Shown in pieces: positions 27,608 through 37,346 of a DNA stretch of 64,000 bases. Location of the stretch: sequence record NC_042136.1; one strand, 5' to 3'. Under the pieces are notes generated by a model, which searched no databases, had not been told where the DNA came from, and saw nothing but the letters and a program-made list of their open reading frames with translations. Every line of letters begins with the position of its first letter. Within the stretch, counting starts at the first letter, position 1. The translations under genes were made by a program, and so were the position numbers.

Positions 27608-27667
27608 CTATATTATCAGGGTGTTGTGAGTGAATCGTTACTCTAAGTGCGTTTCTATAGACACCCT
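27608..27667 (+). promoter_or_regulatory. putative early promoter with overlapping inverted repeat
   Basis: AAACCTATATTAT-CAGG-GTGT; AGGGTGT (27618-27624) is complementary to ACACCCT (27661-27667). Confidence 0.7.
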
Positions 27668-33267: not shown

Positions 33268-34293
33268 ATGGCTAATAAGAAAGAACAACCTAAAGATGTA
33301 GAGATCACCGTAGTACTGGGTGGTAAAATTCAAGACTTGGTTGGCAAACCCTTCGATGGTAAGAAGGTCAAAGACATTTTGACCCAAGATCAATTGGAGA
33401 ACATCTCAGGGTTCGTAATTCGTGAAGAGTTAAGCAAACGAACACTTTACGAAGCAACCGCTAAAGATGAAAAAGGTCGTGAACTGAAGGTGATCTTTAC
33501 GGAAGGGGACCATGTCGTCAAAATCGAAGAGTTGATGTCTATGAGTACGCCAGCTGCGACGTTGTTCTTGGTAGGGCGTACTAAAGTCCACGCTCGTAGT
33601 ATAAATGGTTACGCAGTGGTATGGGATTCTGAAGTCGAAACCCAAATCATTTCGCGATCCACGTTCGTACAGTCAAATGTGGAAGCCTTTAGTGTAAGAT
33701 GTTCTTCGTTGCGAGAAGTCCGTTTAGAAACAGGTAGAGGCAGTGTCGTCATCAAATCTAACCTCATGGATTCTGAAATCAAAGCTGGTCAACAATGTCA
33801 TATTGCTAATTCAACGGTGAATGAATGTTATTTGACGGTGGTCGACACCATACGCTTGCGCAACACTCATATGAAGTCAGTGGAAGTAGATGCTAATGGC
33901 CTGTCTATCAATATGTCTGGGGATGTTAAGAGTTTCACAGAGTTCTCTATGAACGTCCCGGGTGACATTGACGTATTCCATCCGATGTGTCGTATGAGTA
34001 TGATGGGTGAGTGGTACAACCCATTCGGTATCACGCTCATCACGGGGTCTAAAGAGGGTGCGGTCGGTTATTGGTTAGGTAAGGTGGCTTCATTTAAAGA
34101 AGCAGTGTTCCTGAAGCCTGAGCAGCTTAATCAAGATACCCTGTACACCATTCTAGAAGAAATGTTGGCCGAGTACGAAAACCAAGACCTCGATGAGTTT
34201 ACGTTATCAGTGGTGAGTCACTACGCTGATGCGATCTCTGGTCGTGATGAAATCATCACTATGGCTCGTGCCGCTAATCGCATCCTAGGTTAA
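33268..34293 (+). CDS. beta-solenoid repeat protein, paralog 3
   Basis: VWDSEV, VIKSNL and IANSTV repeats; C-terminal GRDEIITMAR aligns with GRISLINQAR of paralog 1. Confidence 0.7.
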   Translation: MANKKEQPKDVEITVVLGGKIQDLVGKPFDGKKVKDILTQDQLENISGFVIREELSKRTLYEATAKDEKGRELKVIFTEGDHVVKIEELMSMSTPAATLFLVGRTKVHARSINGYAVVWDSEVETQIISRSTFVQSNVEAFSVRCSSLREVRLETGRGSVVIKSNLMDSEIKAGQQCHIANSTVNECYLTVVDTIRLRNTHMKSVEVDANGLSINMSGDVKSFTEFSMNVPGDIDVFHPMCRMSMMGEWYNPFGITLITGSKEGAVGYWLGKVASFKEAVFLKPEQLNQDTLYTILEEMLAEYENQDLDEFTLSVVSHYADAISGRDEIITMARAANRILG

Positions 34294-34301
34294 TCATAAA
34301 C

Positions 34302-34353
34302 TAACCCTACCTCCCGTTAAGGAGGTAGGGTTATTATGGTTGATTATTTTTTT
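34302..34353 (+). terminator. intrinsic terminator
   Basis: TAACCCTACCTCC-cgttaa-GGAGGTAGGGTTA, then TTATTTTTTT about 10 nt later. Confidence 0.75.
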
Positions 34354-34445
34354 ACTGGACACGCTATTATTTTGGGGGAGGGGGTCAAAGCTCAAATCCG
34401 TAGGATAATTTAAGATAATTATAAGAAAGATAAATAAATATAAAT

Positions 34446-34475
34446 CTATATTATCAGAGTGTAATGTCCAACACT
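34446..34475 (+). promoter_or_regulatory. putative early promoter with overlapping hairpin
   Basis: CTATATTAT-CAGA-GTGTA after an AT-rich tract; AGTGT (34458-34462) is complementary to ACACT (34471-34475). Confidence 0.7.
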
Positions 34476-34502
34476 TATTTAACCTTAATAGAGGAAATTA
34501 TT

Positions 34503-35447
34503 ATGAAGAACAAATATGCCAAAGACCTAGGCAAAGATATCGAAGCTTACATACAAGCCCATCCTGAGGCCAACCGCATTTCTCAGATATGTGAACACTT
34601 TGGTATTGGTCGTATGGTCTTTGCTCAAGCCATCAAAACCTTCACCCATTTGACCGGTAAAGAGTTTATCAACGTTCAACGTAGGAAAGCCGTGATCGAA
34701 CATCTTAAGAAAAAGAATGCAACGGTAGAGTCAGTAGCCGAAGTCATTGGGATGAAATGTTTGTTCAGCACACAATCTGTCATACGTAAATGGTTTGGTC
34801 AACCTTTAGGTCACTTAGTTCATCTGGCTAATATCAACCGCCTAGATAAATTCTTAAAGTGTGAACATCAAGTTTATCGTCAATTCCTAGCGGAAGAAAT
34901 GATGGACTACATTGATAACCATAATGGGAAGGTTAACATCAATTCTGATCTTACTGGAGAGTTCCAGATGGGACAAACCATGATCAATACGATATGGCGA
35001 GAATACAGTCCTGATGAGACGTTGGTGTTGTATATCCGTATGACTAAAGCGCAATACGTTCGTAACTCATTCCTTAAAGAACAATGTACCATGGAAGAAC
35101 TCCTTAAACGCACTGGGTTTAATCGTACGTTCATCGAGGCGCTCCATAAAGAGCTCTACGGTATCACGTTAGGAGCGTGGGTGAAAAAGAACTACAAACA
35201 TCCACAAATCCGTAATCCTGATGGCAAGGGATTTACGTTGGTTCCGGCAGACACCTTAGATCGCATAACTTCAGCGATTAAGGATGAGCACACTTCGTTA
35301 CAAGAAGTCAGTGACGCGGTAGGGTATTCCATTTACATCGTGTTACGTATTGTTCAGTTTTACACGGATAAGAACTTCGCCCAGTATCGTAAAGAGGTCA
35401 TCGAAAAGAAACTTCATTTGAATAAAACTGAGACGTACTATGTATGA
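34503..35447 (+). CDS. multi-AraC-domain HTH DNA-binding protein
   Basis: start moved to ATG 34503 (GAGGA RBS); two complete AraC/XylS-type double-HTH domains plus a further HTH, with no ligand-binding domain. Confidence 0.7.
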   Translation: MKNKYAKDLGKDIEAYIQAHPEANRISQICEHFGIGRMVFAQAIKTFTHLTGKEFINVQRRKAVIEHLKKKNATVESVAEVIGMKCLFSTQSVIRKWFGQPLGHLVHLANINRLDKFLKCEHQVYRQFLAEEMMDYIDNHNGKVNINSDLTGEFQMGQTMINTIWREYSPDETLVLYIRMTKAQYVRNSFLKEQCTMEELLKRTGFNRTFIEALHKELYGITLGAWVKKNYKHPQIRNPDGKGFTLVPADTLDRITSAIKDEHTSLQEVSDAVGYSIYIVLRIVQFYTDKNFAQYRKEVIEKKLHLNKTETYYV

Positions 35448-35471: not shown

Positions 35472-35996
35472 ATGTTGATAATCAATACCGATGGTTCATG
35501 CATCGGAAAATCAGGTCCCGGACCTTCGGGTTACGGAATCGTAGTCCGTGACGGGGATGTCACCGTAGAACTGTCTGATGGTTACGCTTGGTCTACCAAT
35601 AACCGTATGGAGCTCTTAGCACCTATCATCGCCTTAGAAGGGCTTACAGAGCCTCGTAAGGTGAGTGTTACCACTGACTCCCAATACGTTAAGCAAGGGA
35701 TCGAACAATGGGTGCACGGTTGGTTACGTCGAGGATGGAAACGAGCCGATGGTGGTCCGGTTAAGAACGAGGATTTGTGGCGTCGTCTTTATGACATGAC
35801 TCGTTATCATAATGTGAAATGGCATTGGGTAAAAGGTCACTCTGGTGATCCTGATAACGAACGTTGTGATACCATGGCGCAAGAAGCCGCTCGTGCTAAC
35901 CCGACCAAAATCGACCACGGGTATTATACCTACAACGAAAACCTACCTAAGTATGAATCGAAAGGTCATCAATGGTGGAAGTACAAAAAACGTTAA
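35472..35996 (+). CDS. rnhA: ribonuclease HI
   Basis: TDGSC...G.G, TNNRMEL, TDSQYVKQGI, WVKGHSG..DNERCD; all four acidic catalytic positions present. Confidence 0.95.
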   Translation: MLIINTDGSCIGKSGPGPSGYGIVVRDGDVTVELSDGYAWSTNNRMELLAPIIALEGLTEPRKVSVTTDSQYVKQGIEQWVHGWLRRGWKRADGGPVKNEDLWRRLYDMTRYHNVKWHWVKGHSGDPDNERCDTMAQEAARANPTKIDHGYYTYNENLPKYESKGHQWWKYKKR

Positions 35997-36005
35997 GGAC
36001 ACGTC

Positions 36006-36299
36006 ATGGCTCCTATATCGAACCAGACCATTAAGAAAATCTTAAAGAAAGTGAAGTCAGGTGGAACCATCAGCTGTAATGAAGAAGATGCCGTTTATCG
36101 TCATCCTTCGGTCGGCACTACCGTACGATGTAATTTACTCACACGCCCTAACTACAGTCCGTATTGCGGGAACTTTGGGGAGTGTGAGTCATTACCTAGG
36201 ACGAGTTATGATGGTGGGCAGTTTGTTTGTGGTGACTGCGGATGGCGTAGTCAATTCCCCGACGACTTCATGAAACTTTACCGCCTAGTAAGGAAATAA
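36006..36299 (+). CDS. small Cys-rich (zinc-finger-like) protein
   Basis: PYCG...C..LPRT...GQFVCGDCGW. Confidence 0.6.
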   Translation: MAPISNQTIKKILKKVKSGGTISCNEEDAVYRHPSVGTTVRCNLLTRPNYSPYCGNFGECESLPRTSYDGGQFVCGDCGWRSQFPDDFMKLYRLVRK

Positions 36300-36302
36300 C
36301 TC

Positions 36303-36830
36303 ATGGCTAAGAAATTGATCAGCGATATTCATATCGCGTTGTCTAAGGAAAGTGACTTAGATGATTTGGTGAACGCATTTAAGTCTAACTTAACTGAACG
36401 TCGTTCACCAACCATCAATCATAACTATTTGAACCACCATCCATTCTATCCGGGCATTTGGCATAAATTCAATGGTCGCGCTTACACACTCCCTTATTAC
36501 CTTCGTTTGAAAGACGGTACAGTGTTAGGTGGCGAACAAACAGAGTGTGGACTACATACCCGTTGGGACGGTCATCGTTTTAATGTTATCAGTAACACCG
36601 AACCTGATAGTACCCACGACCACCACATCACGGTAGCTCCTGAATCAGTGGACCACATTTACATCCCGACTAAAGAAGAACTCAGTTTCTGCCACAGCGC
36701 ACAATTGATGTTGGACGCCCACCAAGACCCAGACTGGTTAGAAAAAGTTTATGGTGACCTCCTACCAGAAATCGGGATTGGTGACCACGGGGATTTACTT
36801 TATTTAAAACCTAGGGAAAATGTGCAATGA
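36303..36830 (+). CDS. hypothetical protein
   Basis: 175 aa, in operon; overlaps the next start. Confidence 0.75.
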   Translation: MAKKLISDIHIALSKESDLDDLVNAFKSNLTERRSPTINHNYLNHHPFYPGIWHKFNGRAYTLPYYLRLKDGTVLGGEQTECGLHTRWDGHRFNVISNTEPDSTHDHHITVAPESVDHIYIPTKEELSFCHSAQLMLDAHQDPDWLEKVYGDLLPEIGIGDHGDLLYLKPRENVQ

Positions 36831-37309
36831 AAATTAATTTGGACCCTATTGTTACTGAACCTAAAGGTTACGTTTCAGTAGATTTAGCGTTTCACCAGTG
36901 TGAGCGCATTCGTGATATCTTAATCGAACAAGACATCACTCCTATCGACGATGGTAAGTTCCATTGCACGATCGCTTACGACAAAGATTTAGGTCACGTT
37001 ACGTTAGAACAAGAGATCGACCCGACTAGAGTCTACGAAGGCGAAGTCGTTAGCATCGAACTTATGGGACCGGTTAAAGACGGTAAGCAGTCCGCTTTAG
37101 CATTTGTTATGCGCAGTGACCAGCTTAAAGAAGAACACGAGTGTTGGTTAGCTGCTGGCTATGATCATAAGTGGGATGACTACGTCGCACACATGTCTGT
37201 GGCTTACGACATTGATGTAGAAGAAGGCGAACGTATGAAAGAGATCCTAAAACCTTTCATCGGTGAAACGTTCTATTTTGATAATTTGTCAGCCGCTCCG
37301 GTTAAGTAG
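36827..37309 (+). CDS. acb1: 2H phosphoesterase, anti-CBASS Acb1 (T4 gp57B)-like
   Basis: two HxT/S motifs, KFHCTIAY and YVAHMSVAY, with gp57B-like context (GYV at the N-terminus; L..EH...LAAGYDHKWDDY..H). Confidence 0.75.
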   Translation: MKINLDPIVTEPKGYVSVDLAFHQCERIRDILIEQDITPIDDGKFHCTIAYDKDLGHVTLEQEIDPTRVYEGEVVSIELMGPVKDGKQSALAFVMRSDQLKEEHECWLAAGYDHKWDDYVAHMSVAYDIDVEEGERMKEILKPFIGETFYFDNLSAAPVK

Positions 37310-37316
37310 TATTTGT

Positions 37317-37346
37317 ACCCGTCTTCTTAGGCGGGTTTATTTTTTT
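37317..37346 (+). terminator. intrinsic terminator closing the early AraC-RNase H-Acb1 unit
   Basis: ACCCGTCT-tctt-AGGCGGGT followed by TTATTTTTTT. Confidence 0.75.

Follow-up and report, generated by a model that had tools for sequence, protein, structure and literature searches.

The transcription factors MarA, SoxS and RamA (structures 1bl0, 7w5w and 7bef) consist of an AraC-type DNA-binding domain alone, a seven-helix, bipartite helix-turn-helix (HTH) fold within 107–129 amino acids, and lacking a ligand domain they are presumably controlled by abundance. The N-domain of Ada from E. coli (1u8b) uses a single AraC-type HTH subdomain for DNA binding, which follows a zinc methyl-acceptor domain. 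Nucleus-forming jumbo phages transcribe their genomes with polymerases of their own, and next to nothing is known, as far as we are aware, of their gene-specific regulators. An accessory HTH regulator of a nucleus-forming phage (Chimalliviridae) is gp094 of Erwinia phage RAY, which was shown to reside outside the phage nucleus, on the chromosome of the host, and was described as H-NS-like on host DNA; AraC-like HTH activators have been predicted in group 1 jumbo phages, for example QGZ14570.1 (Iyer et al. 2021, PMC7824862). Here we describe gp176 (YP_009626152.1, labelled “hypothetical protein” in RefSeq) of Vibrio phage VP4B, a sensor-less protein of five HTH modules in the arrangement 2 + 2 + 1, i.e., two complete AraC domains and a half domain. 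The gene was studied in a window of 64,000 nucleotides of the phage genome (NC_042136/KC131130; window position 34000 corresponds to position 206053 of the record). VP4B is classified as Tidunavirus, Gorgonvirinae, Chimalliviridae, and is a nucleus-forming, phiKZ-like phage, as presumed in the initial annotation of this DNA.

The coding sequence of gp176 (34503..35447; this and all other features given below are on the plus strand) comprises 314 codons plus stop. The first complete AraC/XylS DNA-binding domain, D1 (34503..34856, residues 1–118), is basic and contains HTH1 and HTH2. The second complete domain, D2 (34857..35198, residues 119–232), contains the acidic HTH3 and the basic HTH4. A basic beta-hairpin linker (35199..35246, residues 233–248), with strands predicted at residues 235–237 and 244–246 and an invariant G241, leads to D3 (35247..35444, residues 249–314), a half AraC domain made up of HTH5 and a long helix. 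The C-terminal tail after D3, modelled with low confidence, ends in YV in the phage isolates. Whereas the half domain of Ada follows the methyl-acceptor domain, that of gp176 follows two complete AraC domains, and whereas MarA, SoxS and RamA have one domain, gp176 has two and a half. For the AraC/XylS field, such a 2.5-domain, five-HTH array would test how far the MarA-type reading of two grooves can extend along DNA.

Pfam HTH_18 matched residues 42–116 of the 327-codon open reading frame (ORF) annotated in RefSeq, which correspond to D1, with an E value of 4.5e-7 and 30.5 bits. Higher scores were obtained for the orthologues P0005 (39.1 bits), P0006 (37.1 bits) and P0012 (59.3 bits); in the latter two, the best stretch, likewise above the Pfam threshold, is located within D2, so that the match to the AraC/XylS profile is significant at the level of the family. 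An alignment of 11 family sequences (A2) was used as profile query and also as input for AlphaFold2. Searched against the PDB, the profile matched MarA, SoxS, AraT and XylR with E values of 2e-9 (best match) to 1e-4, with MarA and SoxS at about 2e-8 to 7e-8; MarA, SoxS and RamA are its best matches in sequence, and all PDB matches fall within profile positions ~8–121. The relation of D2 and D3 to D1 emerged when A2 was cut into three parts (D1, 1–115; D2, 116–232; D3, 233–314) which were aligned with one another by hhalign. D1 and D2 aligned in register over 101 columns (probability 97.9%, E = 4e-13), and the first half of D1 aligned with D3 over 47 columns (78%, E = 2e-5). Consistently, a hidden Markov model (HMM) of D1 alone recovered D2 (i-E 3.5e-6), and a D2 HMM recovered D1 (3.9e-4); no ORF of the window besides gp176 was matched by these two models. 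NCBIfam gave weak matches of gp176 to FtrA, MarA and SoxS, positions 14–59 of the MarA profile aligning with the C-terminal part, D3. The protein is not a MarA or SoxS orthologue, since it scored 19.4 bits against a cutoff of 250 for the NCBIfam model MarA_TF, and 17.9 bits against a cutoff of 174 for SoxS. In the PHROG classification, gp176 belongs to group 27247, which has no assigned function.

The AlphaFold2 model built on A2 (mean predicted local distance difference test, pLDDT, 90.7; predicted template modelling score, pTM, 0.73) contains seven helices (residues 2–110), a short linker helix, another seven helices (125–229), the beta-hairpin (235–246) and four helices (250–313); a separate model of residues 113–314 had a pLDDT of 90. 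In structural alignments (VIA-align), D1 superimposed on the AraC-type domains of YesN, AraT, MarA, SoxS, Rns, ToxT and XylR with Z scores of 9–11.7 over ~105 residues, and D2 on the same set with Z scores of 10–11.2 over 100–106 residues. MarA, SoxS and RamA aligned with D1 at Z 9.5–10.8 and a root-mean-square deviation (rmsd) of 2.1–2.8 over ~105–109 residues, and with D2 at Z 9.6–10.2; against MarA itself, the rmsd was 2.1 over 109 residues for D1 (1bl0), and 2.6 for D2 (MarA residues 9–114). D3 was closest to the HTH subdomain of N-Ada (1u8b residues 76–138, Z 6.9), followed by the N-terminal HTHs of TetR-type proteins (Z ~5.5). The seven-helix domain with two HTHs that is typical of AraC/XylS proteins is thus present twice in gp176, together with a half copy. 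Because profile searches, hhalign and the structure models agree on D1, D2 and D3, the presence of five HTH modules is far beyond chance. The ligand-binding or dimerisation domain of classical AraC/XylS regulators such as AraC, XylS, ToxT and Rns was not found in gp176; in the models the HTH modules and the beta-hairpin cover all 314 residues, and a Pfam scan of the protein detected no domain other than HTH_18. The initial annotation had deduced two full AraC domains, a further HTH and the lack of a sensor domain from peptide strings, all of which are present in the translation, and domain parsing by profiles and AlphaFold2 bears out this reading, including its assignment to the AraC type.

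The start codon used here differs from that in RefSeq, which adopted the longest ORF (34464–35447, 327 codons). ATG 34503 is preferred because it is preceded by the Shine-Dalgarno sequence GAGGA at a distance of 7 nt, because the database orthologues from pTD1 and metagenomes comprise 314 amino acids and begin with the residue encoded at 34503, and because in pTD1 an in-frame stop interrupts the N-terminal extension of 13 codons. Besides, ATG 34464 is only 10 nt past the promoter box described below. The RefSeq start is therefore probably 13 codons too far upstream, and the 314-codon frame chosen in the initial annotation agrees with all three observations.

Its charge, together with the fold, makes it quite likely that gp176 binds DNA. 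The isoelectric point is ~9.2, and net charges across the family range from +4 to +17; D1 is basic, HTH4 (residues 173–232) has a net charge of +6, and D3 is near neutral. The signature core of AraC proteins (F/Y-G-x-T...W/Y) is kept in D1 and D2, the invariant residues Y219, G220, T222 and W226 of D2 corresponding to the core “F-G-x-T-P-x-x-Y”. Conservation is by far the highest in HTH4, with 94% identity in the four close sequences and 34% in comparison with distant ones; the respective values for the other modules are 66–77% and 18–26%. DNA contact by all five modules is doubtful, because HTH3 is acidic.

The family is small and fast-evolving, and appears from database searches to be confined to Gorgonvirinae that infect Vibrionaceae and to related metagenome contigs. 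A tblastn search with gp176 retrieved 15 records only, all of them Gorgonvirinae of Vibrio or Photobacterium, and phmmer, run exhaustively against 1.8 billion representative proteins, gave 13 matches, seven with E < 1e-10; P0012, at E = 3e-5, is a further full-length relative. The remaining weak matches that were scanned proved to be a conventional AraC regulator, a single AraC domain, or repeats of unrelated HTHs, and a profile search of a word-indexed database detected no further relatives of gp176. Three of the weak phmmer matches, the metagenomic proteins P0013, P0014 and P0015 (281–321 amino acids), contain several short generic HTH repeats, with four resolvase-type HTH_7 stretches in one of them; they appear to be other natural HTH arrays, unrelated to AraC. 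The rate of divergence becomes apparent from comparison with neighbouring genes: identities to the orthologues of pTD1, phiKT1028, Aphrodite1 and PDCC-1 are 72, 34, 25 and 22% for gp176, 97, 89, 76 and 78% for RNase H, and 94, 76, 55 and 57% for the Acb1 homologue, respectively. Phage Ariel (phiKT1028), whose infections have previously been imaged by fluorescence microscopy, carries the orthologue UVD32144.1.

VP4B encodes not one but four sensor-less proteins with several AraC domains. Besides gp176, these are the products of the consecutive genes gp065 (382 amino acids, three HTH_18 stretches, 93.5 bits), gp066 (235 amino acids, two stretches, 92.5 bits) and gp067 (234 amino acids, two stretches, 81 bits), which are located outside the window at 85022–87596 of NC_042136 (L019:3107–5681). 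The HMM of the gp176 domain D1 confirmed three, two and two domains, respectively, and all three proteins are basic. They resemble gp176 in that they occur in the same phages, i.e., the same clade of Vibrionaceae phages, and are built entirely from tandem AraC domains, at least two in each. Yet they form a separate family: tblastn with gp176 found a single place in VP4B, and only per-domain HMMs connect them. Moreover, gp065–gp067 contain whole numbers of domains, the half domain and the beta-hairpin being specific to gp176; they score well above the Pfam threshold, gp176 being more diverged; and their locus differs from that of gp176, with no TATATTAY promoter directly upstream of gp065. PDCC-1 has the same triad (QGZ14568–14570). 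QGZ14570.1, the example given by Iyer et al. (2021), is a PDCC-1 gene other than the gp176 orthologue; it has two HTH_18 stretches, and its family occurs in the same 15 phage records.

Tandem AraC domains are not unique to phages, because cellular proteins of this kind are predicted in the AlphaFold database (AFDB) and the ESM Atlas. The AFDB clusters A0A1E5GLQ7 and A0A4R2H9X3 align to residues 10–231 and 7–274 of gp176, and an ESM Atlas cluster of Bacillota proteins of 222 amino acids aligns with a TM score of 0.55 by the 222-residue model. These cellular proteins, which are predictions only and among which no characterised one was found, differ from gp176 in inter-domain geometry (rmsd 10–19) and have no sequence relationship to it. 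The R1R2R3 region of c-Myb offers a working analogy, since its successive three-helix HTH modules place their recognition helices in successive major-groove positions; Myb-repeat arrays are eukaryotic and unrelated to gp176 in sequence. Literature searches on tandem AraC domains, and on the annotation “Msm operon regulatory protein” used in phages, turned up nothing relevant. The initial annotation was aware of no characterised phage protein with such a layout, and no characterised protein of this kind was found here either, but gp176 is not a lone case, given the three further poly-AraC genes of VP4B. We regard it as an unusual architectural variant of a well-known family of DNA-binding domains, AraC-like factors having previously been noted in such phages.

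Expression of gp176 probably takes place very early in infection, as judged from its upstream region. An intrinsic-terminator hairpin (34302..34333) with a stem of 13–14 bp and a T-rich tail ends the upstream transcription unit; a hairpin of differing sequence, followed by ATTATTTTTT, occupies the same position in all nine orthologous loci. It is followed by an early-promoter-like element (34404..34462) composed of an AT-rich upstream part, CTATATTAT (34446–34454) and GTGT (34459–34462), the sequence at 34446–34462 being CTATATTATcagaGTGT, with the layout CTATATTAT-N4-GTGT. Five exact copies of CTATATTAYNNNNGTGT occur in the 64 kb (positions 27608, 34446, 39172, 45531 and 54432), all on the plus strand, between called ORFs, and after an AT-rich “ttt(a/t)caaac”. 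One of the copies precedes GroEL. Consensus sequences of early promoters have been reported for phiKZ (TATATTAC) and 201phi2-1 (…TATATTACDWHDGTG), and also for EL and OBP (PMC7058600, table 2); the gp176 element matches this consensus in its AT-rich part, TATATTAC/T and the downstream GTG, and is a candidate early-gene promoter. In phiKZ, early promoters of this type are used by the injected virion polymerase (2026 review). Among the sequencing runs that carry sequence of the gp176 region, RNA was represented by one weak metagenome (share 0.06), all others being of DNA or metagenomes.

The leader also contains a conserved element, TTAACCTTAATAGAGGA (34479..34495), in the 5' untranslated region. 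It includes the Shine-Dalgarno sequence GAGGA (34491–34495); AACCTT and the Shine-Dalgarno sequence (TTAACCTTnAnnAAGGA) are invariant across nine loci, and the element is unique in the window. A CCUU/AGGx mini-hairpin predicted within it is weak and not significant (z –0.8); if formed, the CCUU/AGG pairing could mask the Shine-Dalgarno sequence of gp176.

From the fold, the promoter and the gene context, we favour a model in which gp176 is a sensor-less DNA-binding protein of the transcription-factor type, with five homeodomain-like HTH modules, that acts on the host. The injected virion RNA polymerase would transcribe the gene in the first minutes of infection. The protein would bind DNA as a monomer, each full domain inserting two recognition helices into adjacent major grooves as in MarA; the site recognised by D1 and the second half of D2 (D2b), possibly with a contribution of D3 and the basic hairpin, would be extended or composite and span ~30–50 bp, while the acidic HTH3 may provide a protein-contact surface instead of a DNA reader. 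As in MarA and SoxS, the absence of a ligand domain would leave abundance to determine activity. In the most speculative step, for which we have a slight preference, the protein would target the chromosome of the host and its sigma70 RNA polymerase, for early takeover or counter-defence. We assign a probability of roughly 40% to this chain as a whole.

AraC-type activators act via contacts with the C-terminal domain of the bacterial alpha subunit (alpha-CTD) or region 4 of sigma70, which phage polymerases do not possess. A host target is slightly favoured because of this dependence, and because gp176 is a non-core, clade-specific and fast-evolving protein. It is also supported by the grouping of gp176 with a counter-defence gene, the Acb1 homologue gp179, and by the precedent of RAY gp094, an HTH regulator from Chimalliviridae that occupies the host nucleoid. 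The parallels to the described systems are limited. Unlike MarA, SoxS and RamA, gp176 is encoded by a phage with its own sigma70-independent polymerases; RAY gp094 has an XRE-type fold without an HTH array and is not homologous, and RAY leaves the host chromosome undegraded.

Several observations weigh against the proposed chain. Phages of the phiKZ type do not need host transcription. The HTH_18 score of VP4B gp176 itself is just below the Pfam gathering score of 33.6; HTH3 (residues 119–172) is acidic, with a net charge of –3 to –8, in 8 of the 11 family members; the recognition helices differ strongly among genera; and the conserved non-coding DNA just upstream of the gene points to a target on the phage side. 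In infections by the relatives Ariel and Eric, the host chromosome appears to be destroyed (PMC10587174), which limits a long-lasting host-directed role.

The alternative that gp176 enters the phage DNA compartment, or associates with it, and binds phage DNA is possible, though we consider it somewhat unlikely. Its likeliest site would be the conserved stretch of ~110 bp between the upstream terminator and the gp176 early promoter; roles might include autoregulation of the early unit, a roadblock or switch for the phage polymerases, or the marking of a cis site that is present once and connected with replication. Between the terminator and the ATG, the 169 nt show 88 and 80% identity to pTD1 and phiKT1028; the leader is thus conserved like the coding sequence of RNase H (86 and 78% nucleotide identity) and far above that of gp176 (75 and 64%). 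Within the ~110 bp lies a G-box, TTTTGGGGGAGGGGGTC (34370..34386), whose G columns (TTTTGGGGGAGGGGG) are invariant in an alignment of nine loci (A4) with protein identities of 20–35%. There is one copy per genome (IMG/VR), and one exact copy in the window. With one occurrence per genome and a position outside any hairpin, the G-box was dismissed as a promoter or terminator element of general use; as a candidate, it might plausibly serve as an operator or as another kind of cis-acting site. A phage target would also suit the constant vicinity of RNase HI, the DNA ligase close by, and a 5'-3' exonuclease near the gene in one relative, as well as the resemblance of the four poly-AraC paralogues to a regulatory toolkit and the loss of the host chromosome in related infections. 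On the other hand, the two most divergent loci, L015 and L016, keep the gene but lack both the G-box and an upstream intergenic region, and the contacts with sigma70 or the alpha-CTD that AraC activators normally need are not available on phage polymerases. Enrichment of k-mers in the 3.8 kb of intergenic DNA of the window yielded T-runs of terminators only, and no candidate for a repeated operator; Rfam had no credible match for the upstream region of gp176 or for the non-coding unit after gp067.

An extension of such a phage-directed function, which we consider quite unlikely, is that gp176 and gp065–gp067 form a private HTH-array family of Gorgonvirinae infecting Vibrionaceae, with gp176 binding the G-box region. 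The family would supply the phage's own sigma-less multisubunit RNA polymerases with factors for specificity or timing, or provide initiators or markers of a single-copy cis site. If this were true, they would be the first dedicated site-recognition factors for transcription or replication described for nucleus-forming phages. Either way, the four proteins with concatenated AraC domains provide a handle on the questions whether such a phage steers host transcription in the first minutes, and whether it regulates its own programme.

An architectural role, in which the HTH array coats or bends the host nucleoid or the incoming phage DNA with low specificity in order to silence, compact or shield it, is improbable. 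The basic character of gp176 and its many HTH modules would suit such a function, as would the poor conservation of the recognition helices between genera and the description of RAY gp094 as H-NS-like. AraC-type domains, however, are typically sequence-specific, as established for MarA, SoxS, Rob and AraC, and the strong conservation of HTH4 suggests a defined partner. Moreover, gp176 is a single-copy gene for which no signal of high expression was found, its Shine-Dalgarno sequence being ordinary and perhaps partly sequestered. Very unlikely, finally, is a scaffold, adaptor or decoy that has re-used duplicated HTH domains for binding proteins (for example, RNase HI from the same unit, a polymerase or a host factor) and does not bind DNA: the acidic HTH3, the tight spacing to the RNase HI gene with occasional overlap, the conserved C-terminal tail of low model confidence that could be a docking peptide, and the relatively high pTM, which suggests fixed packing of the domains, would agree with it, but gp176 is basic overall and in D1 and HTH4, it retains the AraC signature core in D1 and D2, and we know of no precedent for an AraC domain that does not bind DNA.

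In VP4B, gp176 is predicted to head an early unit that also comprises RNase HI, an ORF with four conserved cysteines (Cys4 ORF), gp178 and gp179. The gene for RNase HI (gp177, 35472..35996; Pfam RNase_H, E = 2e-42) is located immediately 3' of gp176 in all loci studied, three metagenome contigs among them. The Cys4 ORF (36006..36299, 97 amino acids; YCG..C...PRT...QFxCxxCGW) is annotated in phiKT1028, Aphrodite1 and PDCC-1 and unannotated in VP4B and pTD1; C54, C60, C75 and C78 are invariant in an alignment (A5), and the protein looks like a zinc ribbon, with no match in Pfam. It is followed by gp178 (36303..36830), which has no assigned function and lies in the same terminator-bounded unit, and by gp179 (36827..37309). 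The latter, annotated as “RNA ligase”, matches Pfam PF23474 (Acb1; E = 4.4e-12, 46.4 bits, cutoff 27) and represents an Acb1-type 2H phosphodiesterase of the family that counters CBASS (cyclic-oligonucleotide-based antiphage signalling). Thus, the probable early operon headed by one of the four poly-AraC genes also includes a gene for an anti-CBASS enzyme. The next terminator (37317..37336) is the probable end of the unit; a plus-strand scan revealed no internal terminator. PADLOC detected no match in gp176 or the genes around it. Upstream, gp173 and gp175 were considered as paralogues of each other and rejected (E = 0.38, not significant). The Rhc (RNase H-clamp) protein described in a preprint is a different, larger RNase H protein, for which no HTH partner is mentioned.

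The order of genes is largely kept among the relatives. In the metagenome loci, an Acb1 homologue is encoded two to five genes downstream of the gp176 family gene; Acb1-family genes were found in L009, L015 and L016. Where the contigs reach, a DNA ligase gene is present upstream and GroEL downstream. The position of gp176 as first gene of an early unit, proposed in the initial annotation, is supported in VP4B by the terminator and the subsequent early-promoter consensus, and it applies to Tidunavirus and Aphroditevirus, but not to all relatives: in L015 and L016 the gene abuts the upstream gene, and in one of these loci the promoter motif is found one gene farther up. In the most divergent relative (L015:4815–5747 and L015:1–19), the multi-HTH gene is closely preceded by a gene for a 5'-3' exonuclease and, at a greater distance upstream, by a large SMC_N-like gene; these two genes underline that the surroundings are concerned with replication and repair.

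At the end of gp067, a promoter-like sequence, CTATATAACTGGGGTGT, is followed by ~480 nt without annotated gene and by a clean terminator hairpin (L019:5674–6167, NC_042136 ~87589–88082), a stretch which could code for an early non-coding RNA.

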